The notes beneath the pieces were generated by a model that was not told where the DNA came from, did no database searches, and worked only from the letters and a program-made list of their open reading frames with translations. Both the position numbers and the translations under genes were made by a program. From Eukaryota sp. TZLM1-RC (lineage: Eukaryota; Protista; Metamonada: BaSk clade), in contig JAUPSS010000005.1 in the NCBI GenBank assembly GCA_040285825.1, positions 1,302,001 to 1,366,000 on the forward strand: DNA of 64,000 bases. The letters are read 5' to 3'. This document shows, piece after piece, positions 18,303 through 53,843 of this stretch (position 1 is its first letter; the number at the start of each line of letters is the position of its first letter).

Positions 18303-19140
18303 TTATGTAATTTCACCATTATTTCCTAAAAACAAACCCAAATGACGAATAGCATCAATTGAATATAATTTGGCTTGAATTTCAATACCATCAACTATTG
18401 TGGAAACTGGAGAATTCGATAACAAAACACATTTAAATAAATTAAGTCGGAGACCAATTTTGGTAAATAATTCTTTAAAACATGCAGTTGCTTTTTTCAC
18501 AATATTTAAATCACCAATAAGCACAACATCATCCATATATGCAATCATTTTTAGTGAAGGAAGCATCTCTTGAATTAAACCTTTTTCGAGGTTGACCATA
18601 TAACCATTTAAAACAGTTGTTATTTCACCATATTCACAATTAGCAAATTTTGGGCACTTGACACAACTTGTCTCATCATCAAATTCAGATTTTGGACAAA
18701 TACAGTGACTAAAATTTGAAGAACCAATTGTTTTGGTAATTTTGTACAGTGGACAATTGATACATTGTCCTAGCAAAGGATTATCCAAATGATAACCCAA
18801 TGGACAAGGTTCACATTCCCCTACAGATCCAAGAACTGTTCTTGGCTTACAGTGACATTCGTTATTTAAATAAGATCTAGTTGAATCACAGTCGTTCATG
18901 GTAAGCTCAATTGAAGCAAAATTTGTTTGATAAGAAACTAATATTTCAATATCAACCAATGGTAAGCCAGGGATTTTTAATTCACTTGAACTTGACACAT
19001 GGTGGGTACTCACTAAGTCATGGAATGATTCAACTTCACATAAACTGAGTGTTTGGGTATTATTAATCAGTATATCTGGTGTTTCAGAATTAAATTGAGC
19101 TTAATAATGACGCAACTGGAATGAAACAGGTTTGAACGAC
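18303..19140 (-). pseudogene. Chimeric ORF: Cys-rich surface-protein fragment fused in frame to the family A RT YMDD segment
   Basis: ORF 18303-19013 reads ...GYMVNLEKGLI|QEMLPSLKMIAYMDD.... 18574-19033 matches 17081-17540, and 18308-18573 is nearly identical to 15331-15600. Confidence 0.9.
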
Positions 19141-19423
19141 TACATGATGATGTATAAGACGATGACATTATTATAATCATTAGAAGATTCATGAACGTTG
19201 TGTTTACAAAGAATATTCAAGGACTGTGTATGTGTAGGTTGGAAAAACATGGACAAACGTTTCCTAGAAAAAGCGAAATAAGTGAGACTAAGCTTAACTA
19301 TAACCAAATTTATATGGGAAATCATTCTGAAAACAAAAACATAACTAAGAAACAAAAACATAAATTATTGAGTAGCATCAACAACAGAAAATGACCAGAA
19401 TCGCACAAAAATCACGCTAAATT

Positions 19424-21223
19424 CTAAACTTCTCCAACAAAATTGGGCAAATTTGGATAAATTGGCTCTCTCTCTGATTGTACTGAATTCTGCTTCTGTT
19501 TTTTCAAAGCTGGAAGTACCACAGGTGGTACGAATGTGACCGGTTTTTTTGGTAAAAGTGGTGATTGCTGCTTCAATGAAGAACCATTGACCAAACTCTT
19601 TGTATTTTGATCAATTAATTTCGACTTATCGGCAGATTTCAGTGGTTTTAATGAAATTCCACTGAATGATGAATGATTATTTTCATCTTCATCGTGTCGT
19701 GATAAGCTCGGTAATTGGGTCGCAGGTTTAGAATAAAGTGGCAACATTGTGTCACTCTGTTTCAAATTTGATGGTGATTTTGATTGGCCATTATTGAGAT
19801 TCTGGACACTATCCTTTGCCTTACGGGTAAAAAAGAAATACAATACTAAAACAAGTAACAAAACGACAACCCCAATCAAAATGTAGCTTCTGTAACCAAA
19901 ATTTGCTCTGTCCTGAACTTGATTATCAACAATATCCTTTGTATCATCATTATCAGGAAGTTTGTCAATAGAGAATTCGATACCCGCCTGTGCAAAGAAA
20001 TCAGCATCAACCAACAAAATATAGGTTCCAGTTGGTCCTTCAAAGACAATATCAACTAAAATTTGCTGCTTTGAAAAATCAATAATATTTGTGTAAACCT
20101 CCACGGAAGCATTTGATTTGATGAAAAATTCCAATTGGTTAGAATAATCTTCGTCAAAAATGATGAATTGTCTAAAATAATCCATTATAGCAACAACCAG
20201 TGTTCTATTCAGAGCTGTTGAATCTGCTTCCATCCAGGCAAGACTTAATGCAAAACCATTAGTAGCTACGTCGTTTCCCCATTGGTTAGCCATACAGTTA
20301 TGGAAATTATTGCTCAAAACATCAATGAACGATTCATTAAAATTGTGAACAAAATTCAAAAAGTTTATAAACATAGCACCCCCAGCTCTGTTGGCTTGGT
20401 TATCAATAAAACTGTTGTTATTGATTGTAACATTTAAGTTGTATAAATCATCTTGAATATACAGTGATCCACCATCATGGGTTGCAAAAGAGTTGATGAA
20501 AAAATTGTCCTCACAAATGAAATTCAATGGACTAAATACAGATATACATCCACCAAAGGAGCCAATGTTACTTTCAAAAATATTATAATTATATAATAAA
20601 CTATTGGTCGATTGTTCTAGAATTATTGGGCTGAGAGGTGATTCATTGTGTTTGAAAGTACATTGCTCCAATTCGAAAGTTGAGCCATTAATGCAATGAA
20701 TTAGAACTCCATAATTATCAGTAACAGTACATTCCTTGATTAGAAGGGTACAACCAGAGCAGAGCAACAATGGTACTGTATTATTGAAGTCTGTATAAAA
20801 ATTTGTCAAAGAACTGTTTTGTAAAAGAATTTTGCTTTGATGAAATTCCAAAGCAGAATAGTCGTCTGACAACGTAACGTTATCAAAAGTACAAGAATAA
20901 AATTCCAAATTACTTTCTACGGAATGAAATAGTGGTACATTTGAATTAGCAAAAACCAACTCATTCAGGATGTAATCTGACTGAAAAGATCTGACCACTC
21001 CCTTTTTAAGTAACAAATTTTCATTAAACACAAGGCCAGCTAGGTCAATTTGAGAACTCTTGGATTCAATAAAATAAAATCCATGGTAATGATGATTTGT
21101 ATTGTTCGAGAAATTACTTAGTGATACTACAGAATCATTGAAATTGTAAATGCTATCATCGAAATAACAGTTATCAATGATGAAAGTGTCCATTTGAACA
21201 ACTGAACTGTGAGCAGTCAACAA
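19424..21223 (-). CDS. C-terminal part of the giant surface protein: Pmp-like beta-helix, single TM helix, cytoplasmic tail
   Basis: FxxN/GG(A/C/S)(I/L/M) repeats (FESNIGSFGGCI, ATHDGGSLYI, FIDNQANRAGGAMFI), TM YILIGVVVLLLVLVLYFFF-TRK and an S/K/P-rich tail. Same frame as 21227-45226, separated by one TAA. Confidence 0.8.
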   Translation of the reverse strand: MLTAHSSVVQMDTFIIDNCYFDDSIYNFNDSVVSLSNFSNNTNHHYHGFYFIESKSSQIDLAGLVFNENLLLKKGVVRSFQSDYILNELVFANSNVPLFHSVESNLEFYSCTFDNVTLSDDYSALEFHQSKILLQNSSLTNFYTDFNNTVPLLLCSGCTLLIKECTVTDNYGVLIHCINGSTFELEQCTFKHNESPLSPIILEQSTNSLLYNYNIFESNIGSFGGCISVFSPLNFICEDNFFINSFATHDGGSLYIQDDLYNLNVTINNNSFIDNQANRAGGAMFINFLNFVHNFNESFIDVLSNNFHNCMANQWGNDVATNGFALSLAWMEADSTALNRTLVVAIMDYFRQFIIFDEDYSNQLEFFIKSNASVEVYTNIIDFSKQQILVDIVFEGPTGTYILLVDADFFAQAGIEFSIDKLPDNDDTKDIVDNQVQDRANFGYRSYILIGVVVLLLVLVLYFFFTRKAKDSVQNLNNGQSKSPSNLKQSDTMLPLYSKPATQLPSLSRHDEDENNHSSFSGISLKPLKSADKSKLIDQNTKSLVNGSSLKQQSPLLPKKPVTFVPPVVLPALKKQKQNSVQSEREPIYPNLPNFVGEV

Positions 21224-21226
21224 TGA

Positions 21227-24200
21227 TTATGACTGAAAATTTGATTGAAATTTGATTGGCTTTGACTGAAAATTACTTGCCCTTTGAATATTAATTGATG
21301 CTTGACTTAAAAGATTCTGGAAAAAGACATTTCTTGCTTTGAGGTTAGAATTGGTGAATTCAAAGTGACTATCGGTAGCAGTAGAATCACGAACAAGAAC
21401 AGTATCTAAATCAATGGTAGAATCAGTAGCAGCAATAGATTGAGAATGACAAGCAACAACAGCTACATGATCAAAATCAACATTAGATTTAACAAGGGTA
21501 ATAAGAGGTTCATCATTAGCACATCCACTGATAACTTTACCATCAGAATCAACTGGACCTAAAGTATTGACGTTGGTGAAATCCAAAGTTGAGTCATCAG
21601 CATTGATAAACGAACCTGGATAAGAAGTAAGATCGATAATATCCAAATTATTTAAAGAAATTTCAGATTTAGAAATGGAATCAATCAATCTAAAAACAGA
21701 TGAATCAAGTATTTGAGAATCAATCAAAGAAAATTTACTAGAGGAAATCTTCATAAGGGCCTCAGATGGAGTATCAATATTTAAAATTTGTAGACGCAAA
21801 CCGTCAAAAACAGAACCACTCTTTACGTCAAAAACTTTACCTTCAAGATCGTTAAATTCAACATCAGTTGCAGTGAAATTAGAATTGGTTAATTGAACAT
21901 GTCCAGAAGCTTCTGAATCTAGTACATCAACATTAGTAAAGGTAACATCTGCATTGTTAATACCAACAAGAGTTTGGGCCAAATGACCAATAAGTGAGGA
22001 ATCAGCCAAAGTAACTTCTGAATTATCAACAGTAAATAAAGGGTCAGTAAATGAACAAGTTACAGTAGTTGAAGTAGTAGATTCCTTGACAATATTGATA
22101 TTATCTAAGGTTAATTCAGAATCACTTGAAGCATCAAATAAAGAACCACTATAAGTATTAGGATGAGATACCTTCAAATCATGAATTTTAATAGTAGAAT
22201 CGATTGATTTAAAAGCTGGTCTTACACAAGAACTAATAATTTCAGTTTGTTTTAAATCAATAGTGGAAGAATCAGTAATCATCATCGGATCATTATTAGT
22301 AGTGGTATCAATAACTTTAACATTTAAACCTTGAACTTTAGAATCACTGTTTACGTCAAAAACTTTACCTTCAAGATTGTTAAATTCAACATCAGTTGCA
22401 GTGAAATTAGAATTGGTTAATTCAACATGTCCAGAAGCTTCTGAATCTAGTACATCAACATTAGTAAAGGTAACATCTGCATTGTTAATACCAACAAGAG
22501 TTTGGGACAAATGACCAATAAGTGAGGAATCAGCCAAAGTAACTTCTGAATTATCAACAATAAATAGAGGATCAGTAAATGAACAAATTACAGTAGTTGA
22601 AGCAGTAGATTCCTTGACAATATTGATATTATCCAAGGTTAATTCAGAATTACTTGAAGCATCAAATAAGGAACCACTATAAGTATTGGGATGAGATACC
22701 TTCAAATCATCAATTTTAATAAAGGAATCAATAGATTCAAAAGCTGGCCTTACACAAGAATTAATAATTTCAGTTTGTTTAAAATCAATAGTGGAAGAAT
22801 CAGTAACCATCATTGGATCATTATTAGTAGTGGTATCAATAACTTTAACATTTAAACCTTGAACTTTAGAATCACTGTTTACATCAAAAACTTTACCTTC
22901 AAGATTGTTAAATTCGACATCAAATGCAGTGAAATTAGAATTGGTTAATTCAACATGTCCAGAAGCTTGTGAATCTAATACATCAACATGAGTAAAGGTC
23001 ACATCTGCATTGTTAATACCAACAAGAGTTTGGGACCAATGACCAATAAGTGAGGAATCAGCCAAAGTAACTTCTGAATTATCAACAGTAAATAAAGGAT
23101 CAGTAAATAAACAAGTGACAGTAGTTGAAGTAGTAGATTCCTTGACAATTTTGATATTATCTAAGGTTAATTCAGAATTACTTGAAGCATCAAATATAGA
23201 ACCACTATAAGTATTAGGATGAGATACCTTCAAATCAGCAATTATAACAGTAGAATCAATAGATTTAAAAGCTGGTCTTACACAAGAATTAATAATTTCA
23301 GCTTGTTTTAAATCAATAGTAGAAGAATCAGTAACCATCATTGAATCATTATTAGTATTGGTATCAATGACTTTAACATTTACACCTTCAACTTTAGAAT
23401 CACTCTTTACATCAAAAACTTTACCTTCAAGATGGTTAAATTCAACATCAGTTGCAGTGAAGTTAGAATTGGTTAATGCAAAGTGACCATCAGTAGCATT
23501 TGAATCACGAACAAGAACAGCTTCTAAATCAATAGTAGAATCAGTAGCAACAATAGACTGAGATTGACAACCAACAACAACTACATCATCAAAATCAACA
23601 TTAGATTTAACAAGAGTAATAAGGGGTTCATCATTAGCACATCCACTAATAACATTACCATCAGAATCAACTGGACCTAAAGTTTTGACATTGGTGAAAT
23701 TGAAGGTTGAATCATCAGCATTGATAAATGAACCAGTATTAGATTCATGGTGAACAATATCAAAGTCAGTAATGGTAATTGTGGAAGTTTTGGAATCAAT
23801 AATGTTACTGAATTTAGTATCAGAAAGGTCAACAGTGGTCAAGGTAAGATCAGAATTATTGATCACAATTAAGTCATCAGAATTTGAATTTGAATCAGAA
23901 ATACCAACATTGGTTCCAGTAACTTTAGCATTATCTTGAATATTGAAAACATTACCTTCAAGACCTTGGAAATTGACATCATTCATTGTCAATGTAGTTT
24001 TGGTTAATTCAAAATGACCATCAGTAGCAGTTGAATCACGAACAAGAACAGTTTCTAAATCAATAGTAGAATCAATAGCAACAATAGATTGAGATTGACA
24101 GCCAACAAGAACTACATCATCAAAATAAACATTTGATTTAACAAGGGTAATAAGGGGTTCATCATTTGCACATCCACCAATTATTTCCATCTTGTTAAAT

Positions 24201-27200
24201 GTAACAGTGGATTCTGCTAAGAAGACGAAGCGTGAAGTTCCAAAATAAATCAGTTGCACAAATGAAAATTCCAAATTGGAATTTTTTACAATAACTTCAC
24301 ATGAAATGTGTATTTCAGTCATTTTTGATTCACCTTCACCTTGAAACACTACATCCAAAAATTCAAAATCTATATCGAAATTAGTTTCATTATAAACACC
24401 TTCTTTCAGAATAATTGTCCCGTTATTACCCATTTTTTCAATGATTTTACTAACTGACAAACAAGGGTATGTAGAGGGACCACAGCACTCGTCGTTAATT
24501 CCAATGGGGGACAAGTAAAAAATTGGAGGACACATTTTCATGTTGTTTACAGTTGCAGAATCCAAAGTCAAATTACCACACGCTGAAATTACAAAACACC
24601 CCTTGAAATCAACAATTCCATCAATTACCACATTGCTGTTGATTTCTATCATACCACTGCCAACAATTTTAGAACTTTCTGAAAACACTACTTCGGAATC
24701 AAACGAAACTTTACCATCATTTGAAACATTTAATCTAGAATTGACCAACGTTTGGCATTTCGTAAACAAAAGATGAGAATCGACAAGAACCTCACCTCCG
24801 TTCAATTCACCAAAGTTGAATTCGAAAGTTCCAGATTTAACATGTAATAATTTTTGGTTTTTGTAAATAGCAGAACATCCATCAAGTTTCGCCAAAGACT
24901 GTGTTGCAATAGTAAAGTTGGGACTAGAAATCACACAGTTATCGGTACCTAGAACAGTTCCAGATTCAAAGACTCCAGACAAAATATTGAGGTTAGTATT
25001 ACAAATCTTTTCTCCATCAGTTTTTATTGTAAACTTTTGGGGGGAGAAGACTTCAGAACCAACAAACTCACCTGATTCAAAAACAAAATCTGTCACAGAC
25101 CATGCAAAAGCAGAGTTGATAACACCACCTTGAAACTGATAGTTGGTAATAATTGGATCAGAAACTAAAGATGAAACATAAAGTAAGCCACCAGTCTGTT
25201 TAAACTTATTTAAGGTAAACTCATTAGAAACATCCAAAATTTCAATTAGACCATCAGTCAAAGTGAAAAGACCGGGAGAGCTTTTGCTAGTGGTATCTTC
25301 ATCAAATGTCAGAATAGAGTTTTCATAATTAAAATCATAGTCAATGTCTCCCCAATAAACAGAACAGTTACTGAAAGTGATGAGACTATCATTTAGTACC
25401 AGATTTGGTGAGTGCAACCTAACATTAGAATTAAAAAAAGTAAATCCAGAGTTGATAGTAAGAATGGTCTCTGAGCCAATTTCAAACTGATCTGAAACAA
25501 TACCAAAGCCATTTACATTAAAGTGACCCTGTTTGAGCTTGAAACGACCAGATTGTTGGGTAATATTCCAATCAAAATTGACTACTCCAGATGTTTCAAT
25601 TACTAAATCATTTTTATTAATTAAACAAGGCAACGATGCATTTTGGTTGTCGTGTATAACCCAATTTCCTGCTTGAAGATTCAAGTCACCTTTATTGACA
25701 AATTTAGCACCAACATCACCATATAAGTCATACTTAATTAACCCAAAACCATAATTGACAAATGAAGTGCCTTCCCCAAGTACATGATAAATCTTATCTT
25801 CTTTTGGTTGATTTATTTCAGGATCTAATTTCAAGAAGAAGGTAGCTTGAGGTTCAATAAAAATAAACGATCTACCATGGATAACACCTCTGTACCAAGT
25901 GAATGAACAGGTGATGGACAACAGTTCACCAAGATGGAATTTGTAATCCCCCTTCAAAGTGAAATCACATATTTCAGTATCTTCTTCAAAAATTAACTCA
26001 GTCCCTTCCAGAATGATGCCAGTTGGTCTACACATGGTTGCATTTTCTCTTATAATAATTGTTCCAGCAGGCCCAATGACTGCAGAATCAAAGCAAACAA
26101 ACCCATCAAAAGACATTAAAGATCCAGGAGTCATTTTTATAATTGATTTTTCAGCATAAAACCAACTTTCTTCATCAAAAATATAGGGATAAGGATCACC
26201 TACTTCAAGAGTAGATCCAGGGGAGGAAAGTAAACGTGATGGATGGGAATCAAAACCTCCAGAAAGAACTTTCATTACAAAAGTTTCTGGGATTGTGATG
26301 TTTCCCTTATTCTGCAACTCCCATTCAAACTTGAATTCAATATTTTCCCAATCAGAGGTTAAATCCATCCCATGATTCACAAAGACTACTGGTAAACTAT
26401 CTGGAGTTAAATGTTGAGAAGGAATAGTGATTGGATTAGGGGAGGTCATTGGTTCATATTCATCCCAGTCATATAGTACAAAATTACCAGTATCATGAAT
26501 TTCAAGAACATCATTAAACACAATGGTAGTATTGAGACCACCTCTGATATCACTTTCTTGACGCCAAATCACTGGGCCATTGAAAATAACAGTGGATAAA
26601 TCCTTGAATTCCTTTTCAAAGATATCGATAAAAATAGAACCTTGTTCAGCATAAGTAATCGACTCATCTTGGAAACCTCCACCAGCTCTGAACTGAAACT
26701 GATTCTTGACTGTTACTGTATCAGTTCCTCCTCTGAATCCACCATTAATCAGCAACTCATCAATTATTATATGATGACCAGTAACCAGGGAAACTATAGA
26801 ATTAAAACCAAGTTCTAAGCTAGTGAAAGAAATGTCTGGATTAATGAAATCTTCAAAGAAAACTTGAGTACCCCTAACAACAACTGAAACTTCTTCAGAA
26901 ATAAAAGCATCGTCAGTGATATAGAATCGACCATTGTCCTTGATAGTACATTGTTTCAAAGAAAATCTTGTTTTTAAATAAAATATACCAGTGGGATTTC
27001 GTAGCCCAAAGAAGAAATTATTACCCTCAATGTAAGAATTGTCACCACTTTCAAAGGTAAATGGACGATCATCAACACCAACAGTTGTGCCAAACATTGC
27101 ATATACTGGACCAAAAGAACAACCACCGCCTGCAAAGTAAAACTCTCCTAAAATGAGGTTCAAAACACCATAATGTACAAAGACAAATCCACAGTCAAAT

Positions 27201-30200
27201 TGAGTAACAGTAACATCAATACTTCCATAATTAATGAAATAGGAATCCATTATTGAGTCGTTTGTGAAAGAAGCTCTTTCCCATTTGATTAAGTCAGTGA
27301 ACAGCACATGTCCTTCCTTTGCATTTATAATATTTGAACCATAACCAAGTAACTCTTGATAACCACTAAATAAAAAGTAGCCCTTATTAGTAAGTGTAGC
27401 ATTTTCTTCCATTACTCTTGTAGTGTCTGGAACAGTTGCTTCGCCATTAGTCAAGCAGAAAACATTAGAATCTTTACCAAAACCACCAGACCCTTGCCAT
27501 AAAAATTGATTTAGTACTTCTACTTGATCAGATCCATGGAGGAAACCGTGATCAATCAAAAGATCGTCAATGGTGACTACGCTTTCAGTGTTGAAGGTAA
27601 CATTACCATACTCACAGTGAACAGTATTTAAGGGAACCATTTGAGTTACCTTATTAAAAATAGCATTACCAACAACAACAGTCAAATCAAATTGATTGAC
27701 TAAAACAGCAGAATCATGGAAAACTAAAGTCCCTTCACCAACAGATACCAATTGATCAGTTTCAAAAGTACCTTGAATATAAACCGTTGTCCATTCAAAA
27801 AGATTAATTGCACCAGTTGAAAGAATATTTGAATCAGGACCCAATAATGAATCTTCAGAAGCTGAGGTGAAAGAAAAAGTTGTTCCATAATTGATTATTA
27901 AAGAACCATCACCTCGTATAAATGAAAATGCTTCAAATAAGCCCATATTCAAAGTAAACTTCCCTTCTACAAAAACTCCCCAATAGGAAACAACTCTCAT
28001 TGAAAAAGGGTCAATTGAAGCAGTTCCAAAAATTTCAATAAAAGCATCACATACCTTATCAGTATTAGTAAACCGATCAATACAATCAAACTGGCCATTA
28101 GAAACGAACTTGAGTGAACCCTCTTCAGAAACAACTAATTTTGAACCATTGTACCCAAATAAATTACCATTGGAATTCCATTCTAGTTCTTCATGAGCAA
28201 TAACAACTGCTCCTAAGTGAATTGCTTTGGGATTTTGTCCTGCAATAGTAAGAGAGGTAAACAAATCTACTGTGATATCCCCAGCAAAAGATCCTCCATT
28301 CCATTCAAAAGAAGCAGAATCTCCAATAATTTGAACATCATCATTGACTCCAAAAATTTCAGCATTTTCATCTAAAAGTCCAAAACCATCAAAAGTAATT
28401 ATACCTTGACCAGTATTGAAAAGCATTAAGGAATTACCGCGAAGATCGAAACCACGTACACTTCCTAAATCGTTGTCAAGGGAAATGAATTGCAAAACAG
28501 CATGATTAACGAGACGAATTTCAGCAATATCCAAAAGAATTGGACCAGTAAAAGTAATAGTTCCTATAGAAAAGTGCAATAAAGAAGTGCTGAAAGTACC
28601 TTGTACAATGACTTCAATAAAGGGTGTTGAAGGTTCAAATCTAGCAGCCTGAGAGAAACCTTCAATAACTTCGAAATAATGGGAATCTTTGTGAAAGTAA
28701 TGAGTCGAATTTATAGAAGAATGGCCGAATAAAAGTTCAGAGTTGCCATAACTGTAGAAAGAAGAATAGACATTCAATGGTCGTCTTGGATTAATAGTAC
28801 CCTCTTTGAGATGAAATTCCCCACTTGAAATCTCTACTGGTGCATCGAATATTCTGTAAACATTAGAAATAGCTTCTGTTAAAGGTCCCATAAATCTAAT
28901 GATATTGTTTTGACTACGTTCACGGAAATATGCATTAATCATTTCAGTATAACCCTCAATAACAATTGAGGTAGAATGGTATAGATTAACTGCATTAGTA
29001 GTATCAATAAATAATTTAGAACCAGGAAGGAAGACTAATTTAGAAGTATCCCTCAATTGTTTAGCAGAAGGGTTGGATAACCATTGGGTAGACCTACAGG
29101 TGCCAATAGTGCCCTTATTCTTAATGTAAATAGTACCAGAACCTTCAATTATACCACAATTCCATACAAATTCATTAGTAGTAATATCATCAGAGCCGCT
29201 TTTAGTACCACCATCTACAATAAGTGACTGAAAATTAAGGTGATGAGAGGTACTAAATTCAGCTTCTCCATTATATAATTCAATATCAGTAAATTCAAGG
29301 GCTTCAGAAGACTTTCTGAATCGAATAAACTCATCAGAGGACATAACAAGGGACCTTGTAGAAATTTGTTCATCGGTACCATCAATGATAAACCAACTAT
29401 GGGTATTAATATTTAATCTATCAAAGGTCCAATTGCCAGAAGCTGAACGGGAACCATCTACTAAAACGTGAGCTCTTTCAGTTAAATGAATTTCAGTAAG
29501 GTTAATAAACGCATTCTTTCCAAAAACCCAATTCCCCGTAGGTTGAATGAAAATAGGAGACATATCCCAAGTACCATCAAATAACACCTTGTTTTCTGGC
29601 GACCATTTCCTTGTGTGAGTATTAAAATTCCAACTATCCATATGAATATTACCGTCCCCAACCCCAATCACTCCATCTTTAAAAGTATGGCTGTAATGTC
29701 GCAAATGCAGACCAGAACCGTCTTCCATTAAGTATTTGGAAGAACCATAAGAAGTACTTGGTCCATTAAAAGTAATTTCAGTATTTTCTTCAGAGGTAAA
29801 TAAATTGTAGTTGTGGATAATAAAATCCAAAGTAACACTGATATCTGGGATTGGGAAATTTAAATGATTATTATTAATAAGAGTGGGTAAATTAGATCTG
29901 GAATTGGAGATAAAATCTACTGATGACGTGAATTCCATATGAGCATCATCTAAAACTGTCCAAGTACTGGGGCCAGTAAGATAGAAATCACCAGGGCCTC
30001 CAACATTAGTTGTATCATGAATATTTACATATTTGCCCTTACTAAAACCTCGATCTCCTGCATCCACAGAGTGAAGGTCAATCAAGAAATCAACATCAAC
30101 TTCAATAGAACCACCCAGCCACTGCGTGTAGTCAAAACTAACAGAATCATAACCAGCTAACAGCGAATTATTATAAGAATTGTCATTATAAATAGGTTGG

Positions 30201-42200: not shown

Positions 42201-45200
42201 GATGAATGGTTAACAAAGCATTCACCCAAAGAAGTAATTTCAAAATTTGTAAAAAGCTCGGGAAAATTAATGGCAAAATTGTAAGGAAGATTTAAAGCAA
42301 TAAACTTTGACACATGGTCCAAACTAATCATTTTTGAAACAATTTTGGAGTTTAAAGTAATGATCGTGGAGTCTGCCCGTGGACTCAAAGAATTTTCCGC
42401 AGGGTATATTTTGAAAAACTGAGAAGCGTGAAATAATTCTAAATAAGACTGAGTGTAATGGGAGTGCACAATCAATTCTGAATTAGGGAAATAAAAAGGA
42501 ACAATAACAATGAAATCATCACAATTAACAGTAAATAAATCAACAACGCTACCAAAACCAATATACTGCAATGATTGGTAACCTATAGAGGTAAAATCAA
42601 CAGTGAATGATGCAAACTGTTCTGCTACATGGGAAAGATCAATTGCTTTGCCCCCAAAGATAAATGATTTTTTCCACAAAATGCTGTTGTAGAAATCAAA
42701 ATTTTCACCTGTCAAAGTCATCAAAACATCAGTTGACCTATATTCCCATTGAACTGAACTTGGACTTAACGAATCAACCGAAACAGCCTTTGGTAAGTCA
42801 TGAATAGTGTTACAATAGAATCTGGTACATAACCTCAACCTTGCTTCGGTTTTGCCTTCCTGGAATACTAACTTGACAGACATACATCCAGTTTCAAGAA
42901 CCTTGTAGTCAATTACCTGGACGTCACCCTCACTTTGTGGATAATAATCGTATATATTGATAGAGTATAAATCTGCACATATTTCAATTATACATAATTG
43001 CTTAGTGATACATATGAATTCTGTAGGTAAAACAGAAAAATCAACAATTGGTAGTTCAATCAAATGTGCAAAATCATGAGAAAGATCAATCAGGAGCTGC
43101 AAATTATGTACTCCAGAAAGGTTAAAATGGAGCTCAAATTCAGTTGGACCAGCAACCTTCCAGTTTAAAGGAACATTTCCAACAACTTCTATTTCATTGC
43201 ATTGGGTAAGAGTATCAAAGGTTAATTTCTGATTAAATGTCAGAGTAATTACCTCAACAAAAGGGTCGAGTGACTGTGTACTCACATTATATGATGGCAA
43301 GTTGACTGACCATTTATAAATATTTGATGCTAAACCATCAACTTCAACTACAAGCGAAACATTGGAAGAAAAGTCACAAATATTGTGTACTTGTAAAGAT
43401 AATTCAGTATGATTGACAGAAGCAACAGAATAAAGTATATTTGCATTATTAAAATTAACATGAATGGCATCTGTACTGTTGAAAAAGTTTTGCCCTTTGA
43501 TGAATACAATATTTTGAAACGAAAAAGAATTAGGGTCAACATTATACAAAACAGGTAGTTCAAAACAAAAGGTCATTAATACAACAATGTCATCAAGACT
43601 TCGTTTGACTTCTAAGACATGACAACCCGTACCTGGAGGAACATTAACGGTAATGTTCTCGTGTTTGATGGGTGTCCCTGGTATAGTAAAAATAATAGTA
43701 CTACTGGAAATGAATAATAAAGCATAACCTAAATTAGTTCCATTCAATATAAATTCTTTACCCTGAGTTGGTATTGGAGGGAGTGCAACCGTGGGTGCAC
43801 ACAAGTCAAAAACTTGTTTATGGTTAAATTGTAACTGTGGTAACGAAAAATGCACTTCCAAATGACGAAGGGAGCTGTGAACAGCATAATTATCCTCAAA
43901 CATTATTGAAATAAAATCAATAGAGGAAAATATTTGTTTTGAAACAGAATGGAATACTTCAATAAACACAAAATATCTTATTAGTTCTGCATTATCAAAG
44001 CTCAACTCAATAATCCATTCCTTTGTACCAACACATTCATCAATAGATGATAATGTACCAATCATTAACTCTAAATTTAGGTATTTATCTTTGCCCAAAA
44101 TCGAGCTTTTCTCATCCAACTCAATCGACGTCGCTAATACTGAATGATTTGTATTTAAGTGCATTGTAGAATTGATAAGAGATATCTTTGTGGCAAATAA
44201 ATTGTTAGGAAACTCGAGCAAATATGCAGTCGAGTCTTTGATCGATAGTTCCAAGAAAAGTGTTACATCAACAACACAGCCAATCAAGTTTGATTGAAAA
44301 ATGATAAATGTTGAATTAATCGAATTCACCATAGAGTTTTTTTCATTGCAAGCGAAAACATTAGATATTCCATTAAAACTATGGCCAGCCATTTCTAATT
44401 TAGTCACCTCTAAATAGCTCTTGTCTATATCAAATAAGTTACCATTGACAATCGTGAGATTGGTTAAAAAAGTTCTAAGAAACTGATTAATTGATTCTAG
44501 TGAATAAAATAATGAATAAATCTCACAGTCAGAAACAAAAAAATTAATCAAACACAATTGAGAGTCAATAACTTCAATTAAGGGAGAATGAGAAATAAAA
44601 TTTTCAATGGAAATATTTCTAATGGCAACATAACTGGAGTCTTGGGCTAGCAATAACTGGCCTATTGAGTCACTAACAACAGCATTATTTAACTCAAAGC
44701 TGGATGATGTGGAATTAATGAATAAAGAGCATTGATAATTGGACAGATTTAGCGAAGTAAAAACCACTTCACTAGTGATGGCTTTTATGAGATTTACGTT
44801 GAAGTTTACAACAAAACAATCAGTAATATACATAAATGATTTGGTAGAAAAAAGAAGTGAGGGATTCAATGAACCAAAATTAGTGAACATTAATGAATTA
44901 TCAAAAGCAGTTACATCATTTGCGTAATCGATTGCTAAATCATTTTCTTCATCAGACAGTATTTCTTTAACATTATCAAATCCTAAACCGGTGGCTTGAA
45001 AGTTGCAATTGGTTAACATAATTTGCCCAACTTGTTTTGAATCACGAAAATGTACATTGTTGATAAAAATAGTGGAATCCGTGACAACAATAGATGATGC
45101 TTGTGAATCAACAACAACTACATCATCAAAATCAAGTTTAGAATTATCAAGTGTAATAAGAGGGTTTTCATTGGTACATTGATCGATAAATTCGATGTGT

Positions 45201-45226: not shown

Positions 45227-46690
45227 GGAAATAGACTTTGCAATTCCAGAAAAAAAAAGAACTTGATAAAAGTGAATTCCAAATTGGAATTGCTTACAAT
45301 AACTTCACATGAAATGTGTATTTCGGTCATTTGTGAGTCACGTTCACCTTGAAATACTACATCCAAAAATTCTAAATCTAAATCGAAATTAGTTCCATTA
45401 TAAACACCTTCTTTCAAAATAATTGTCCCGTTATTACCCATTTTTTCAATGATGTTACTCATTGACAAACAAGGGTATGAAGAGGGACCACAACACTCGT
45501 CATTAATTCCATTGGGGGACAAGTAAAATTTTGAAGGACACATTTTCATGTTGTTTACAGTTGCAGAATCCAAAGTCAATGTGTGACACGCTGAATTAAC
45601 AAAACATCCATTGAAATCAACAATTCCATTAATAACCACATTACTGTTGATTTCTATTATACCAGTTCCAACAATTTTAGAACTTTCTGAAAACACTACT
45701 TCGGAATCAAACGAAACTCTACCATCATTTGAAACATTTAATCTAGAATCGACCATAGTGTGGCATTTCGTGAACAAAAGATGAGAATCAACAAGAAGCT
45801 CACCTCCGTTCAATTCAGCAAAGTTAAATTCAAAAGTTCCAGATTTAACATGTAATAATTTTTGGTTTTTGTAAATAGCAGAACATCCTTCAAGTTTGGC
45901 CAAAGATTGTGTTTCAATAGTAAAATTGGGACTAGAAACTACACAATTATCGGTACCTAGAACAGTTCCAGATTCAAAGACTCCAGACAAAAAATTGAGG
46001 TTAGTATTACAAATCTTCTCCCCATCAGTTTTGATTGTGAACTTTTGGGGGGAGAAAACTTCAGAACCAACAAACTCACCTGATTCGAAAACAAAATTTG
46101 CAACAGACCATGCAGAAGCAGAGTTAATAAGACCACCTTGGAACTGGTACTTGGTTATAATTGGATCAGAAACCAAAGATGACACATAAAGCAAGCCACC
46201 AGTCTGTTTAAACTTATTTAAGGTAAACTCATCAGAAACATTCAAAATTTCAATTAAACCATCAAACCATCAGTCAAAGTGAAAAGACCGGGAGAGCTTC
46301 CCATCACAGCATCAGTTATACTAGATGAACTTCCATCATGGAATAACAATTGACCACCAGCAACGTCCCACAACGAATCTGAAAAATCGATTCTAGAATT
46401 TTTAGTAATGTTAATTAAACCTGAATAAACTACCTCTACAATAGAAAGATTTTTGATTAAAACATCTAAAATTTGAGTAGATCCGCCAGAAATATTGAGC
46501 TTCAACTCGTCAATAATTCCAAAAGCTTGAAATTAACCCCCAGTTTGAACAATAAAACCTTTTTCAACGTAAAGATCCTGAGCAAAGGTAACTTCACCAT
46601 CATCAATCAATAACTTTCCAGAATGATCAACTAAACCATCAATAACAACATAAGATTCTGGTCTAGAAACGTGAATATTTCCAGGTGAAT
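45118..46690 (-). pseudogene. Disrupted segment of the giant locus; 45200-46299 duplicates 24180-25283
   Basis: ORFs 45118-46245 and 46254-46505. Lesions: A9 run at 45250, 8-bp duplication 46257-46272, TAA at 46533-46535, 409-bp deletion near 46690. Confidence 0.85.
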
Positions 46691-49600
46691 TTTCATATTT
46701 TTAGTAATACCAGAATCATAAATTTTACCTCCTTTCCAAGTAAAAACATTAGAAACTTCAATAATGCCAAAACCAGATCTTTTTCCACCATTCATAAAAA
46801 GATTTTCTATATAAAGATCATTAAAGGAATTGAAAAATAATTCACCCCCATCTATAATAACAGTTTCAAATAAAGGTTGGGTTTGAACAGAAGAATCAAA
46901 AATAATGAGATCGCCACCAGTTAAATGAAGAGACGAATTAATTATGGAAATTTGGAACATTGAATGGAAAACAACCTCACCACCATTAATTTCGATTTGA
47001 GATTGATTGAAATCTATAGTAGAAATTTCAAATAAATTAACAATTCCTCCATTACAAATTATTGATTGATATTGTTGAATTACTGTTCCAAATACATTGA
47101 GTTGTCCACCATTTACTTCACTATTGATCAGATTTACTTCTGAGTCTTCTTTAAAGTTGACTATTCCGCTATTTATAACAAGATTGACTTGGTCAACCAA
47201 AACATTGTTGGCAAAAGTAACTTCACCATCATCAATGAATAACTTTCCAGAATGATCAACTAAATCATCAATAACAACATAAGATTCTGGTCTAGAAACG
47301 TGAATATTTCCTAGTGAATTAGAAACAATTGAAATATTTAAAAAGTCAAAATTTCCTGTTAATTCCAATGTGCAACTTTCATCAATTTGAATTGTATTAG
47401 TAGAAAAAGAGTCTGTTCCAATTGATAAAGTACCATTTTCAATTAAAACCAAATCATGGTTTTGGAGACCCAGAAGAAATTCAAAAGTGTCAGCAGTGGA
47501 AATTTTAGCAAATATACCATAATTGATAAATAAAGGCAATGCTTCATTTTCAGAAGTGGGATTCAATTCACCTTGGCCTCCAATTTCAAAGACAGCATAT
47601 GGCTTATTGATGATTCTGGTAAAAGCACCAGCTTCAAGTGTTCCTTCAAGAAGGGTCACATTACCATAATTAACCAAAGTGTGACCATCATCTATCTCCA
47701 TTAAGGAGTCACCTTCAACCAGCATTAGTTTCATATTTTTAGTAATACCAGAATCATAAAGTTTACCCCCTTTCCAAGTAAAAACATTAGAAACTTCAAT
47801 AATGCCAAAACCAGATCTTTTTCCACCATTCATATAAAGATTTTCTATATAAAGATCATTAAAGGAATTGAAGAATAATTCACCCCCATCTATAATAACA
47901 GTTTCAAATAAAGGTTGGGTTTGAACAGAAGAATCAAAAATAATGAGATCGCCACCAGTTAAATGAAGAATGGAATTAATTATGGAAATTTGGGATAATG
48001 GATGGAAAACAACCTCACCACCATTAATTTCAATTTGAGATTGATTGAAATCTATAGTAGAAATTTCAAATAAATTAACAATTCCTCCATTACAAATTAT
48101 TGATTGATATTGTTGAATTACTGTTCCAAATACATTGAGTTGTCCACCATTTACTTCACTATTGATCAGATTTACTTCTGAGTCTTCTTTAAAGTTGACT
48201 ATTCCGCTATTTATAACAAGATTGACTTGGTCAACCAAAACATTGTTGGCAAAAGTAACTTCACCATCATCAATGAATAACTTTCCAGAATGATCAACTA
48301 AACCATCAATAACAACATAAGATTCTGGTCTAGAAACGTGAATATTTCCTAGTGAATTAGAAACAATTGAAATATTTAAAAAGTCAAAATTTCCTGTTAA
48401 TTCCAATGTGCAACTTTCATCAATTTGAATTGTATTAGTAGAAAAAGAGTCTGTTCCAATTGATAAAGTACCATTTTCAATTAAAACCAAATCATGGTTT
48501 TGGAGACCTAGAAGAAATTCAAAAGTGTCAGCAGTGGAAATTTTAGCAAATATACCATAATTGATAAATAAAGGCAATGCTTCATTTTCAGAAGTGGGAT
48601 TTAATTCACCTTGGCCTCCAATTTCAAAGACAGCATATGGCTTATTGATGATTCTGGTAAAAGCACCAGCTTCAAGTCTTCCTTCAAGAAAGGTCACAAT
48701 ACCATAATTAACCAAAGTATGACCATCATCTATCTTCATTAAGGAGTCACCTTCAACCAACATTAGTTTCATATTTTTAGTAATACCAGAATCATAAAGT
48801 TTACCTCCTTTCCAAGTAAAAACATTAGAAACTTCAATAATGCCAAAACCAGATCTTTTTCCACCATTCATAAAAAGATTTTCTATATAAAGATCATTAG
48901 AGGAATTGAAAAATAATTCACCCCCATCTATAATAACAGTTTCAAATAAAGGTTGGGTTTGAACAGAAGAATCAAAAATAATGAGATCGCCACCAGTTAA
49001 ATGAAGAGACGAATTAATTATGGAAATTTGGGACATTGAATGGAAAACAACCTCACCACCATTAATTTCGATTTGAGATTGATTGAAATCTATAGTAGAA
49101 ATTTCAAATAAATTAACAATTCCTCCATTACAAATTATTGATTGATATTGTTGAATTACTGTTCCAAATACATTGAGTTGTCCACCATTTACTTCACTAT
49201 TGATCAGATTTACTTCTGAGTCTTCTTTAAAGTTGACTATTCCGTTATTTATAACAAGATTGACTTGGTCAACCAAAACATTGTTGGCAAAAGTAACTTC
49301 ACCATCATCAATGAATAACTTTCCAGAATGATCAACTAAACCATCAATAACAACATAAGATTCTGGTCTAGAAACGTGAATATTTCCTAGTGAATTAGAA
49401 ACAATTGAAGTATTTAAAAAGTCAAAATTTCCTGTTAATTCCAATGTGCAACTTTCATCAATTTGAATTGTATTAGTAGAAAAAGAGTCTGTTCCAATTG
49501 ATAAAGTACCATTTTCAATTAAAACCAAATCATGGTTTTGGAGACCTAGAAGAAATTCAAAAGTGTCAGCAGTGGAAATTTTAGCAAATATACCATAATT

Positions 49601-50110
49601 GATAAATAAAGGCAATGCTTCATTTTCAGAAGTGGGATTTAATTCACCTTGGCCTCCAATTTCAAAGACAGCATATGGCTTATTGATGATTCTGGTAAAA
49701 GCACCAGCTTCAAGTCTTCCTTCAAGAAAGGTCACAATACCATAATTAACCAAAGTATGACCATCATCTATCTTCATTAAGGAGTCACCTTCAACCAACA
49801 TTAGTTTCATATTTTTAGTAATACCAGAATCATAAAGTTTACCTCCTTTCCAAGTAAAAACATTAGAAACTTCAATAATGCCAAAACCAGATCTTTTTCC
49901 ACCATTCATATAAAGATTTTCTATATAAAGATCATTAGAGGAATTGAAAAATAATTCACCCCCATCTATAATAACAGTTTCAAATAAAGGTTGGGTTTGA
50001 ACAGAAGAATCAAAAATAATGAGATCGCCACCAGTTAAATGAAGAATGGAATTGGCTATGGAAATTTGGGACAATGGATGGAAAACAACCTCACCACCAT
50101 TGATTTCGAG
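46592..50110 (-). repeat. 1038-bp (346-aa) near-identical coding tandem repeat, ~3.4-3.8 units, with the last unit deleted by 409 bp
   Basis: The marker cttcaccatcatcaat occurs at 46592, 47221, 48259 and 49297. Confidence 0.93.
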
Positions 50111-50746
50111 TTTAGACTGGCTGAATTCCACAACAGAATTTTCAAATAAATTAACAACTCCTCCATTGCATGTAAGTGATTCATATTGTTCAATACCAGC
50201 TCCTTGAACATTAAGTTTTCCCTTATTTATTTTGCTAGTAATTAGAGTGACATTTGAACCTTCTTTTAAGTTCACTATTCCATCAGCAAGTAGGAGTAGG
50301 TTGATTTCAAAAACATTGGCTTCCCTGGTAATGTCCATTTGAGCTTCATCAGCGATAACATTTACAAAACCAGTGAGGTTGAATGTGTTTGAAACAACCG
50401 AAAATGACGACGATGATGATGTGAGAGACACGTCACCACTTCCTTGCAGCAACGAAGTATGATTAAGATGGAATTGAGCCTTGATGTCTAGTATTGACTG
50501 TTTAGTGACTTTTATGACTCCAATTGACCACGAGTCACCCTCAACAATTAAAGAGTTTGAACTTGAACAACTAGAGATTTCATGAATCTTAATTAGTCCA
50601 TAATTATGGAACGAGATGGAAATAGTAAACTCACCACAGGTTTTTTTTTCTAACAGTGGCGGTATTTGTGTTAATAAATAAGGGGGTAATGTCATCAGAA
50701 ACATCAGTAATGCTACCTTTTCCGGTAATAATAAAGTTGGAGTCAA
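46631..50746 (-). CDS. Giant locus segment carrying 346-aa tandem beta-helix repeats
   Basis: 1371-aa ORF, joined to the upstream ORF by removing one base from the T9 run at 50641-50649. Confidence 0.75.
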   Translation of the reverse strand: MTPTLLLPEKVALLMFLMTLPPYLLTQIPPLLEKKTCGEFTISISFHNYGLIKIHEISSCSSSNSLIVEGDSWSIGVIKVTKQSILDIKAQFHLNHTSLLQGSGDVSLTSSSSSFSVVSNTFNLTGFVNVIADEAQMDITREANVFEINLLLLADGIVNLKEGSNVTLITSKINKGKLNVQGAGIEQYESLTCNGGVVNLFENSVVEFSQSKLEINGGEVVFHPLSQISIANSILHLTGGDLIIFDSSVQTQPLFETVIIDGGELFFNSSNDLYIENLYMNGGKRSGFGIIEVSNVFTWKGGKLYDSGITKNMKLMLVEGDSLMKIDDGHTLVNYGIVTFLEGRLEAGAFTRIINKPYAVFEIGGQGELNPTSENEALPLFINYGIFAKISTADTFEFLLGLQNHDLVLIENGTLSIGTDSFSTNTIQIDESCTLELTGNFDFLNTSIVSNSLGNIHVSRPESYVVIDGLVDHSGKLFIDDGEVTFANNVLVDQVNLVINNGIVNFKEDSEVNLINSEVNGGQLNVFGTVIQQYQSIICNGGIVNLFEISTIDFNQSQIEINGGEVVFHSMSQISIINSSLHLTGGDLIIFDSSVQTQPLFETVIIDGGELFFNSSNDLYIENLFMNGGKRSGFGIIEVSNVFTWKGGKLYDSGITKNMKLMLVEGDSLMKIDDGHTLVNYGIVTFLEGRLEAGAFTRIINKPYAVFEIGGQGELNPTSENEALPLFINYGIFAKISTADTFEFLLGLQNHDLVLIENGTLSIGTDSFSTNTIQIDESCTLELTGNFDFLNISIVSNSLGNIHVSRPESYVVIDGLVDHSGKLFIDDGEVTFANNVLVDQVNLVINSGIVNFKEDSEVNLINSEVNGGQLNVFGTVIQQYQSIICNGGIVNLFEISTIDFNQSQIEINGGEVVFHPLSQISIINSILHLTGGDLIIFDSSVQTQPLFETVIIDGGELFFNSFNDLYIENLYMNGGKRSGFGIIEVSNVFTWKGGKLYDSGITKNMKLMLVEGDSLMEIDDGHTLVNYGNVTLLEGTLEAGAFTRIINKPYAVFEIGGQGELNPTSENEALPLFINYGIFAKISTADTFEFLLGLQNHDLVLIENGTLSIGTDSFSTNTIQIDESCTLELTGNFDFLNISIVSNSLGNIHVSRPESYVVIDDLVDHSGKLFIDDGEVTFANNVLVDQVNLVINSGIVNFKEDSEVNLINSEVNGGQLNVFGTVIQQYQSIICNGGIVNLFEISTIDFNQSQIEINGGEVVFHSMFQISIINSSLHLTGGDLIIFDSSVQTQPLFETVIIDGGELFFNSFNDLYIENLFMNGGKRSGFGIIEVSNVFTWKGGKIYDSGITKNMKIHLEIFTFLDQNLMLLLMV

Positions 50747-53700
50747 AATTATTAATAACTCTTGTATTATTATAGCACTTCAAGTTGCCATCTTCAAAAA
50801 CACTGTAACGAGAAAGTAACAATTCATGATTTGATCCGAGGTGCTTTTCGTCAGGAGTTCTAAATAGAGTAAATTCAATACTTTCGGTAATAGCTTTCGA
50901 TTTAAGATACCCAGACTCCCAAACAAAAACGGTATTAATAACGAGAGTGCGGTCTCCTTGGCGAGTACCTCCATTCAGTAACAAAGCATCAATATATACA
51001 GGGTTAGCTTGGTCTTCAGTTTCAAAAATACCACCCGATAATTCCATATTATCAAAGTGTACATCATAAGCACCGGAAACTGTTGAAGTGAAAAGTAAAT
51101 GACCACCAGATATTGTCGCATTTGTATAATCAAATTTAGCATTATTATCAGCGATAAACTCTCCACCTGAAAGGATTAAATTGGATTGAGAAAAATCAAT
51201 CAACTTGGCAGAATTGACAGAGAGTAGTCCACCATCTTGGGAAATGATAGAAATGAAGTAAATACGACTGTTACTCAAAACGGAAACAACACCATCATTT
51301 AAAGTTCCAGAAAACGATGTTATGATGGAATTATCAGTGAAATGAAGAACACCTTGATCCACCACAAAATTAACAACTAAAACACTACTTTGATTGACAA
51401 ATTCAGCAACAGCATCTGCATGTTCAAGTTTCAAATCACCTTTTACGTCAAAAGTGCCAGAGTTAATAAAATGTGAAACCAATGAATTAAGAACAATTAG
51501 AGATTGATCAACACCATTGATTGTTGCAGTATCAGTAGAAATAAGTGTAGACTTTATGATTAAACTACTTATAGTATTGATTAAATTGGAATTAGTACCG
51601 TTACCAGAAAGAATTAATTCACCAGATTCAACATTTAGGGTAAAGTCATTGGTGAAATACCATCCAAATTCTACAGCATCATGATTAGAGTTAATCGTAC
51701 CTTCACTCCAAACAACCAAATCAGATGAATCACCAGCAGTAAATGAACATGTTCCTGTGATATCAACAGTAGAATTAGATAATACATGAATAAAAGCTTG
51801 AGCTTCACCATAAACATTACATCGAGAAAATTCAGCAGAATCAATCAATTCTAATAAATGACCATCAGTTATTGACTGTTGAGACTGAGAACTAAACTTA
51901 AACAATTTCAAAGATTTGGTTATTCCTGAACCACTCAAAGTACCATGAGTAAAAGTAAATAAATTTAATACTTCAATGGTTGATTCACCAGATCGTTTAA
52001 CATCGGAACCGTCTAGATGCAAGACATCTATTAGTACAACTTCAGCCAAATTAGCTTCAAAGTTACCACCGGTAATTGTACATTCAGCAATGATGGGCGA
52101 ACCAGTTACACTGGAAGTTTCAAATAAATAAAGCCCAGAGTTAAGATTGATTGATGCACTAGTTAGACTGAAAATGGCTCCTGATTTTGATATAAATTCA
52201 CTAGATTCAGCATCTAACAAAAAAGTTGATTCATAAGAATCAACAATACTTCCATCGAGTAAATAATATTTACCATCAGTTATTTCTACTTTTCCAATAG
52301 ACTTTGTTTGTGAATTAGCATAATGAATAACAGATCCTGAAGATTTTACTTTACAGTGGTCAATTGAATCAATAACAGCACCTGATTTAAAAGATAAATT
52401 TCCCTTTACAATGTTACAATTCAAAACGTCCACATGTCCAAAGTGGTTCAGTTGACCATCAGCAATATTCAAATTGACATGGTCAGAGGTGAAAGTCTCT
52501 GAAAAATAAACAGATCCAGTTTCCACTGTTAAACAAGTAGTGTTTTCTTGGCAATTAACTTGACCATTGAAGACAATATTGTCAGAATTAGCATAAATCA
52601 TTGCATCAGTATTAATTTCAATGATAGAAGTTAACTCTTGAACTAACTCATTACTGATGTTGAGCTGACCAGAAGAATCTAGCAATAAATTGCCTGAAAT
52701 TTCTGTAAATTGAATGAAACCAACTTTTGCATTCGAATGTAAATAAAAATCACCATCAGAGTATAAATTAACAGAGAATTCCACAACAGAGCCATCTTCA
52801 ACATGCAAATCACCCAAGTTTCTGATACCAGAACAAAAGCTACAATCATCACATGCAAAATCAAAGTTCAAAGACTTGGAGGCATCAGAAGAAAAGTTAA
52901 GAGAAACGGAATGATCTACGTAAAGTACGGCATTATCATGGAACTTGGTTGTAAAACCATCACAGCTGCCTGTACTTAATTCAAACCTACCAATTTTATC
53001 AATAAATAACCGAACGTTTTGCTCAAGTATTTTATCCTCGCAATCAGTTATAATGATTTCATTTAAAACATGGAAGTAGATGGAATCTTTTCCAATAATC
53101 CCTCCATTAAATTGCATGTCCTTGACATGAGTAGTTCCCAAAGAAGAGATCCTAGCTACGTCATTAACTTCAAGAAAATTGACCTTGGCAATACAGTCAG
53201 GTTCATCAATAACCAAACTGGCATCATTGTTTAAAATCAACACGGTCCACTGAGCACAATTTTTGGTTCCACTTGGATAAATGATCAATTTACCACCATT
53301 CATTTCAGTTGTTACATCTTTGAATTTTGTTTGAGAAGCTTGGTGTAGTGTAATATTTCCACCATTGATAAATACAATAGAATCAGTAAATGAGGGGGAA
53401 GAGCCTGGTTGTACAACAACAGTACCGTCATGAATCTTGATGTGGTCTAATTTAACATCTGAATCGTCTTCGAATACTAAAGAACCATCAAACATATCAT
53501 TAATAACTACTTTTTCAACAATGGCTCCTTCTTTAAAAACAACGTGGCAATCCTCAAACATTTCGTTAATAACAATTTGCAAAACACTACTATTTTTGAT
53601 GGTGAGTGGACCATTACATTTACCAATAATTAATCCAAGTAACTGGGTGTCAATAATGTCTAAATCAGTACCGAGTTCAGGGAGATTGACTCGTTCAGCG

Positions 53701-53843
53701 TTCACTTCTTGCCCCAACAACATAATTCCTCCAATATAATCAATAGTAACATTTACCATCAAGGTCTGTCTCAAATCTAAAAGACCATCTCTCATATATA
53801 AAATCAACATACGAATTAAAGACAAAATACAACACCAGAGCAT
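50631..53843 (-). CDS. 5'-most preserved segment of the giant locus (beta-helix repeats), probably 5'-truncated near 53790
   Basis: 1070-aa ORF with the same GGxRxG..FxWxxG repeat style. The first ~12 codons derive from a dispersed repeat. Confidence 0.75.
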   Translation of the reverse strand: MLWCCILSLIRMLILYMRDGLLDLRQTLMVNVTIDYIGGIMLLGQEVNAERVNLPELGTDLDIIDTQLLGLIIGKCNGPLTIKNSSVLQIVINEMFEDCHVVFKEGAIVEKVVINDMFDGSLVFEDDSDVKLDHIKIHDGTVVVQPGSSPSFTDSIVFINGGNITLHQASQTKFKDVTTEMNGGKLIIYPSGTKNCAQWTVLILNNDASLVIDEPDCIAKVNFLEVNDVARISSLGTTHVKDMQFNGGIIGKDSIYFHVLNEIIITDCEDKILEQNVRLFIDKIGRFELSTGSCDGFTTKFHDNAVLYVDHSVSLNFSSDASKSLNFDFACDDCSFCSGIRNLGDLHVEDGSVVEFSVNLYSDGDFYLHSNAKVGFIQFTEISGNLLLDSSGQLNISNELVQELTSIIEINTDAMIYANSDNIVFNGQVNCQENTTCLTVETGSVYFSETFTSDHVNLNIADGQLNHFGHVDVLNCNIVKGNLSFKSGAVIDSIDHCKVKSSGSVIHYANSQTKSIGKVEITDGKYYLLDGSIVDSYESTFLLDAESSEFISKSGAIFSLTSASINLNSGLYLFETSSVTGSPIIAECTITGGNFEANLAEVVLIDVLHLDGSDVKRSGESTIEVLNLFTFTHGTLSGSGITKSLKLFKFSSQSQQSITDGHLLELIDSAEFSRCNVYGEAQAFIHVLSNSTVDITGTCSFTAGDSSDLVVWSEGTINSNHDAVEFGWYFTNDFTLNVESGELILSGNGTNSNLINTISSLIIKSTLISTDTATINGVDQSLIVLNSLVSHFINSGTFDVKGDLKLEHADAVAEFVNQSSVLVVNFVVDQGVLHFTDNSIITSFSGTLNDGVVSVLSNSRIYFISIISQDGGLLSVNSAKLIDFSQSNLILSGGEFIADNNAKFDYTNATISGGHLLFTSTVSGAYDVHFDNMELSGGIFETEDQANPVYIDALLLNGGTRQGDRTLVINTVFVWESGYLKSKAITESIEFTLFRTPDEKHLGSNHELLLSRYSVFEDGNLKCYNNTRVINNFDSNFIITGKGSITDVSDDITPLFINTNTATVRKKNLW

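Follow-up and report, generated by a model that had tools for sequence, protein, structure and literature searches.

We analysed a 64,000-nucleotide stretch of DNA (the window; positions 1,302,001 to 1,366,000 of contig JAUPSS010000005.1, 1.86 Mb, assembly GCA_040285825.1) from the soda-lake flagellate Skoliomonas litria TZLM1-RC, in which a giant surface-protein locus runs along the minus strand from position 53843 to 19424. TZLM1-RC is the type strain of S. litria (PMC11603281), and its 31.9-Mb genome, 55% of it repeats, was assembled in 16 contigs from 41x Nanopore coverage with 206x Illumina polishing (PMC11316075). The locus comprises five open reading frames (ORFs) and one short open segment in succession, which a sequence-only reading had taken for a single gene of ~11,400 codons broken by six small lesions. 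We searched its pieces (A, B, B2, C, D and E) separately, with an X placed at one internal stop, and checked each lesion against an internal repeat or one of two intact paralogs, P0002 (P9112_003278, encoded on another contig) and P0003 (P9112_009656, encoded on the contig of the locus). At 7,890 and 6,195 amino acids these two proteins of the same genome bear out the earlier proposal of a giant surface-protein family. All features below lie on the minus strand unless stated otherwise.

Piece A (50631-53843) is an ORF of 1,070 amino acids with 80% identity to P0002 residues 6394-7447. Its frame is broken by lesion 1, a 9-base homopolymer at 50641-50649 (T9 on the plus strand, A9 on the coding strand) that is one base longer than the in-frame run, at a site which P0002 reads uninterrupted as VIKQGCGEF. 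Piece B (46631-50746; 1,371 amino acids) starts with a part 86% identical to P0002 residues 7432-7889 and carries ~3.5 copies of a 1038-bp (346-amino acid) tandem repeat at 46691-50281, the copies being 95-96% alike. At lesion 2, a deletion junction at 46690-46691, the last repeat copy is short by 409 bp and the frame is shifted; the ~136 amino acids absent here are present in P0002. Segment B2 (46264-46688), with 141 codons open in the third frame and ~42% identity to the B repeats, contains lesion 3, a TAA (46533-46535) at the glutamine of the repeat motif GGQL..FG. Lesion 4 is an 8-bp tandem duplication (46257-46272) in which TGATGGTT appears twice, the same sequence being single-copy in the paralogous module at 24031-25283 and in P0003. 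Piece C (45118-46245; 375 amino acids) is an ORF within a 1.27-kb module that ends in the Cys-containing motif FYLSPNGINDECCGPSSYPC, which we take to be the beginning of a beta-helix domain. The module shows 87.6% DNA identity to 24031-25283 and 90.6% protein identity to P0003 residues 4959-5287. Lesion 5 (45250-45258) is a second 9-base homopolymer (A9 on the plus strand), +2 or -1 relative to P0003 and the paralogous module.

The large ORF that follows (45226-21227; 7,999 amino acids, within an open frame of 8,025 codons) falls into two parts. D1 (39436-45304), its first 1,956 codons, has a receptor-type body, and D2 (21230-39435; 6,068 codons) is colinear with P0002 and P0003. The frame is closed by lesion 6, a TAA at 21227-21229 where P0003 has a lysine, and the locus is completed by piece E (19424-21223), an ORF of 599 amino acids with a TAG stop and 91% identity to P0003 residues 5596-6194.

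The six lesions proposed in the sequence-only reading all lie where it had placed them. Each interrupts a frame that is open in intact relatives, the paralogs providing colinear coding sequence across every one; the six consecutive ORFs it had described do form a continuous minus-strand run, which is more exactly the five ORFs and the 141-codon segment given above. Of the six lesions, five are crowded into 5.4 kb (45250-50641; P ~0.005 for an even spread, taking a quarter of the locus as the target), so that the upstream part looks older while D1-D2-E looks recently assembled or converted. TAA is a working stop codon in this genome, as the neighbouring gene at 60014-64000 ends with it. A reading of TAA as glutamine was rejected, because one of the two TAA codons stands at a glutamine and the other at a lysine position and TAA also terminates the neighbouring gene.

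Homopolymers of eight or more bases occur at only two places in the 34-kb locus, 45250-45258 and 50641-50649, both of them frameshift sites, and all other A/T runs are of seven bases or fewer. Replication slippage and residual Nanopore error would both be consistent with this pattern, and it raises the possibility that the two 9-base runs, and perhaps the 409-bp deletion or the boundary between D1 and D2, are artefacts of assembly or polishing and that the real genes are much less damaged. The make-up of the assembly (41x Nanopore with Illumina polishing; PMC11316075) allows for this, as do a 3.7-kb repeat at 98.5% identity and the 1-kb tandem repeats, regions that short reads polish poorly. 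Public reads from four runs over 41200-47150 gave contigs of 151-294 nucleotides at a depth of 2-4, several of them from paralogous copies and none bridging a lesion, and thus neither confirm nor refute any of the breaks. However, 206x Illumina coverage should mend homopolymers in unique sequence and neither site is closely copied elsewhere in the window; two TAA substitutions and an 8-bp duplication are atypical of Nanopore errors; the swapping of repeat copies cannot create a boundary between D1-type sequence and D2, which must exist somewhere in the genome; and a truncation of the 5′ end, described below, would still be left. We therefore consider such artefacts an unlikely explanation of the locus.

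D1 is the body of a multi-pass receptor-type gene. It carries a TIG domain (43322-43555) and an Ephrin_rec_like Cys-rich domain (PF07699; 40106-40225; E 6.7e-09), the latter beside membrane helices, and no other Pfam family passes the curated cut-off in any piece of the locus. A hydrophobicity scan placed four transmembrane (TM) helices at 39437-39859, just after the Ephrin_rec_like domain and in the middle of the large ORF. The reference for D1 is the neighbouring paralog at 60014-64000, which is the 3′ portion of a receptor-type gene that appears intact and also has an Ephrin_rec_like domain: in a self-comparison of the window, 39436-43138 and 60298-64000 are 98.5% identical, with 57 substitutions and no indels. 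Beyond the point that matches the end of D1 the neighbour continues for 95 more codons, encoding four more helices, to its TAA stop. Against this neighbour the synonymous divergence (dS) of D1 is 0.021 and the ratio of non-synonymous to synonymous divergence (dN/dS) is 0.68 (16 synonymous and 41 non-synonymous changes), which indicates relaxed constraint. The differences are clustered (bins of 14 and 17 against 0-5 elsewhere, P = 0.0005), with 41 of the 57 changing an amino acid, and this distribution suggests gene-conversion patches or diversifying change. D1 is also 60% identical to residues 1488-3306 (1,819 amino acids) of a further S. litria protein, P0004. A word search among proteins of 4,400-14,000 amino acids found no D1-like part in other giants, shorter models lying outside that search.

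The last 430 amino acids of the neighbour constitute a module that, in a full HMMER search, matched 138 proteins, and all matches whose source was checked belong to S. litria or to one of its two sister strains. Eight large S. litria proteins of 2,446-5,489 amino acids (P0004, of 3,403 amino acids, P0005, P0007, P0008, P0009, P0011, P0017 and P0032, of 5,489 amino acids) have the module at their extreme C-terminus. Across 17 relatives 22 Cys columns of the Cys-rich part are invariant, and an AlphaFold model built from the 17 (predicted local distance difference test score, pLDDT, 83) consists of a Cys-rich domain on a compact base of eight helices. The Cys-rich domain alone resembles the cysteine-rich domains of Eph, CaSR and taste receptors (Z ~5). 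The helical membrane base had no match in the PDB at E ≤ 0.001 using Foldseek, and its best VIA-align wide score, Z 5.6, fell on unrelated helical proteins. We considered a seven-helix fold of the G-protein-coupled receptor type for this base, which neither of these searches supports.

At position 39436 the identity between D1 and the neighbour stops abruptly. In the window copy the 430-residue module is cut short at residue 336, inside a helix (residues 321-339) that is the fourth of the eight in the AlphaFold model, and whereas all members of the family end just after the last membrane helix, this copy runs instead into a second gene. The junction spans 39435-39440 and contains a GGTA microhomology at which the identity to the neighbour gives way to homology with P0002 and P0003. 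P0002 from residue 564 and P0003 from residue 565 align to the window exactly here and in frame, and the peptide GTFSLAE, which spans the junction, is common to both. An acceptor-like sequence, CCTTTTCCCTAG, led us to consider an intron at this point; this was rejected since P0002 and P0003 encode the same GTFSLAE there, which places the crossover inside a GGTA common to both parents and not at an intron boundary.

Downstream of the junction, P0003 residues 565-6194 and P0002 residues 564-6003 are colinear with 39445-19430. D2 is 81-87% identical to P0002 residues 564-6003 and 35-81% identical to P0003 residues 565-5594, and it includes the second copy of the piece C module (24031-25283) and a series of 528-bp stalk repeats (21812-23481). 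P0003 remains colinear to the very end of the locus and shares with it the stalk, two Pmp-like coils, a TM helix (19817-19900) and a tail rich in proline with YPNL at its end, at 88-91% identity. Both paralogs have a signal peptide and an N-domain of 565 amino acids, and neither has any of the breaks. For this head (P0002 residues 1-563, P0003 residues 1-564, including the signal peptide) the window holds no counterpart, the best match having an E value of 0.12. Judged by homology, D2 and E are thus a P0003-type gene that lacks its head, with neither signal peptide nor N-domain.

The locus had been read as ending in a Pmp-like beta-helix, a TM helix and a tail. The terminal helix and tail are present and 91% identical to those of the intact P0003, although the four further TM helices at 39859-39437 had been missed. 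The Pmp-like element amounts to two adjacent coils (~20327-20473) of the form F..N...GGSL and F..N...GGAM, without the repeated GGA(I/L/V)/FxxN motifs or the profile match that the term would imply. In ~11,400 amino acids there is one GGA[ILVM] and one GGSL motif, both of them in piece E; A, B, C, D1 and D2 have neither, and FxxN counts do not exceed those of shuffled sequence, except mildly in D1. The profile PF02415 (Chlam_PMP) matched no piece, even at E ≤ 10 for piece E and for the last 1000 amino acids of D; NCBIfam likewise gave no Chlam_PMP match, and no other beta-helix profile matched even at E ≤ 10. Piece E had no match to PDB sequences, Pfam or NCBIfam. Its nearest ESM Atlas clusters are mostly Chlam_PMP or Beta_helix (feature similarity 0.80-0.81, TM-score 0.34-0.54), values that lie below the search's own threshold and serve as leads only. 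The Atlas model of the E ectodomain has a predicted TM-score (pTM) of 0.61, and a single-sequence AlphaFold model an unusably low pLDDT of 34. A resemblance of piece E to Pmp, short of membership in the family, is plausible.

At the other end of the locus, homology of piece A to P0002 begins at ~53804, at P0002 residue ~6391; farther upstream the window sequence is unrelated and dense in stop codons. Each of the ten relatives that were inspected starts with a classic signal peptide, and in most of them a Trp-containing motif (FYWS-type) comes next. Piece A, which begins MLWCCILSLIRMLILYMRDG, has neither, and stops lie just upstream. Pieces A and B together are 80-86% identical to P0002 residues 6394-7889, which in that protein are internal and follow the D2-like body. 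By this comparison ~53804 is a mid-gene 5′ breakpoint and not an N-terminus of the family type. The order in P0002, with the D2-like body first and the A-B-like part second, is the reverse of that in the window, and P0002 ends without a membrane anchor exactly where the window has its 409-bp deletion; P0002 may itself be truncated or a fusion.

Since the pieces differ in their nearest relative, the locus is a patchwork of segments, and we interpret it as most likely a mosaic pseudogene derived from two adjacent giant surface-protein genes of S. litria. The single gene with six small lesions envisaged in the sequence-only reading does not hold: the large ORF is an in-frame chimera, in which a receptor copy cut in helix 4 is joined to residue ~565 of a protein of a second class, and the 5′ end lies in mid-gene. 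The first gene would have consisted of A-B-C-D1 (~4,800 codons) and belonged to the class that ends in an Ephrin-receptor-like Cys-rich domain and an eight-helix base. The second would have been D2-E (~6,670 codons), of a single-pass class in which a signal peptide and the 565-amino acid N-domain precede a long rod of beta-helix-like repeats, followed by two Pmp-like coils, a single TM helix and a tail rich in proline. In the simplest history, a single deletion between these tandem neighbours made the junction, and would have removed helices 5-8 and the stop codon of the first gene, the spacer and the first ~565 codons of the second. D1 may have been copied or converted recently from the neighbouring gene, and this would account for a frame still open over 8,025 codons. 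The order of these rearrangements is likewise inferred, and presumably no full-length product is made.

Several points weigh against this interpretation. A stop-free frame of 8,025 codons is unusual for a pseudogene, and D2 and E together carry one lesion only in 20 kb, so that the second gene either remained intact until a short time ago or may matter even now. Topology does permit the fused frame, as the four helices would return the second ectodomain to the outside, and a hydrophobic Met-led stretch in piece A could act as a weak signal sequence. The two homopolymer lesions could be leftover Nanopore errors, and the public contigs, at their depth of 2-4, bridge no lesion. Finally, the GenBank pipeline has modelled a product here, a hypothetical protein of 10,715 amino acids that ends at the TAA at 21227 and is followed by a separate hypothetical protein of 589 amino acids.

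Taken at face value, the GenBank models describe a functional gene with a product of ~10,700 amino acids and a 589-amino acid tail protein, in which short introns skip the frameshifts and the large product has two ectodomains and five membrane passes. The in-frame junction with its topologically consistent helices, the hydrophobic N-terminus of piece A and the long open frame accord with this as well as the deposited product does. If begun at the ATG at 53843, however, the 10,715-amino acid model must skip ~469 nucleotides as introns, which is roughly the amount needed to step over the breaks, and such introns would remove codons that are conserved in the colinear paralogs. No donor of the GTWYGT type (an assumed motif) bridges any lesion, the only pairs found being chance GT..AG combinations. 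Moreover, in all relatives examined a complete eight-helix base is the last element of the protein, and the TAA at 21227 is still the end point of the model, which thereby loses the TM anchor and tail. We regard a functional gene of this kind as very improbable, and the 10,715-amino acid model is probably an annotation artefact.

The modules shared among the paralogs differ greatly in identity (98.5%, 87-91% and 80%), and this would suit a silent archive, that is, a broken mosaic retained to donate repeat modules to expressed giant paralogs through gene conversion, which would diversify the cell surface. The clustering of the differences between D1 and its neighbour is as expected of conversion patches, and long open frames persist despite the breaks. 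Patchy conversion is nevertheless common in any multigene family and does not depend on an archive kept by selection. S. litria is not known to have an expression site or a switching system, and it is a free-living bacterivore under no obvious immune pressure; we hold the archive to be quite unlikely. It is similarly doubtful that the fusion is alive in a broader sense, either as a two-ectodomain protein of >1 MDa, with four receptor-base helices and a terminal TM helix and with breaks that are assembly errors or are overcome by frameshifting or TAA read-through, or as a module archive feeding gene conversion into expressed giants.

Fragments of reverse transcriptase, together with stray Cys-rich modules, occur in both flanks of the locus. 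The stray copies (17043-17608, 18573-19148 and 55504-55704) lie among the reverse-transcriptase fragments and are ~92% identical to 39940-40554. An ORF at 18303-19013 matches both Ephrin_rec_like and RVT_1, the stray module being in frame with a reverse-transcriptase segment. One retroelement family is present in several copies (7480-8892, 13865-15278, 57790-59204 and others) that are 96-98% identical, occur in both orientations on both sides of the locus and are in some cases nested. Amid this debris, on the plus strand, is an ordinary-looking inosine-uridine nucleoside hydrolase gene (9737-10762; 341 amino acids; PF01156 from stored annotation).

Chlamydial Pmp proteins (PF02415) and the Pmp-like surface proteins of protists such as Trichomonas are the comparison systems for a locus of this type. 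The likeness to chlamydial Pmp is confined to the two coils of piece E. In place of an autotransporter beta-barrel, for which no family matched, the C-terminus has a single hydrophobic helix and a proline-rich tail, an anchor of eukaryotic type with one membrane pass and a cytoplasmic tail. Closer counterparts are found within the genome itself. P0002 shares with the window both the D2 body (81-87% identity) and pieces A and B (80-86%), and the Skoliomonas Cys-rich receptors with a multi-helix base share with D1 the Ephrin_rec_like domain and the first four helices. These receptors end a few residues past helix 8, whereas the copy in the window breaks off within helix 4 and has neither the N-terminal signal peptide nor the FYWS-type motif.

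On its own the locus is a decayed copy. The 10,715-amino acid "protein" in GenBank very probably does not exist as a product, and lists of the largest proteins should leave the locus out. The eight-helix membrane base, which has no recognised fold in the PDB, may merit a study of its own. At least two classes of giant surface protein, 2,400-7,900 amino acids long and without a match to curated families beyond single Ephrin_rec_like and TIG domains, exist in S. litria, and these classes exchange modules of kilobase size and can fuse. The locus thereby offers a starting point for studies of the origin and turnover of repeat genes of such size in a free-living metamonad whose genome is rich in repeats.

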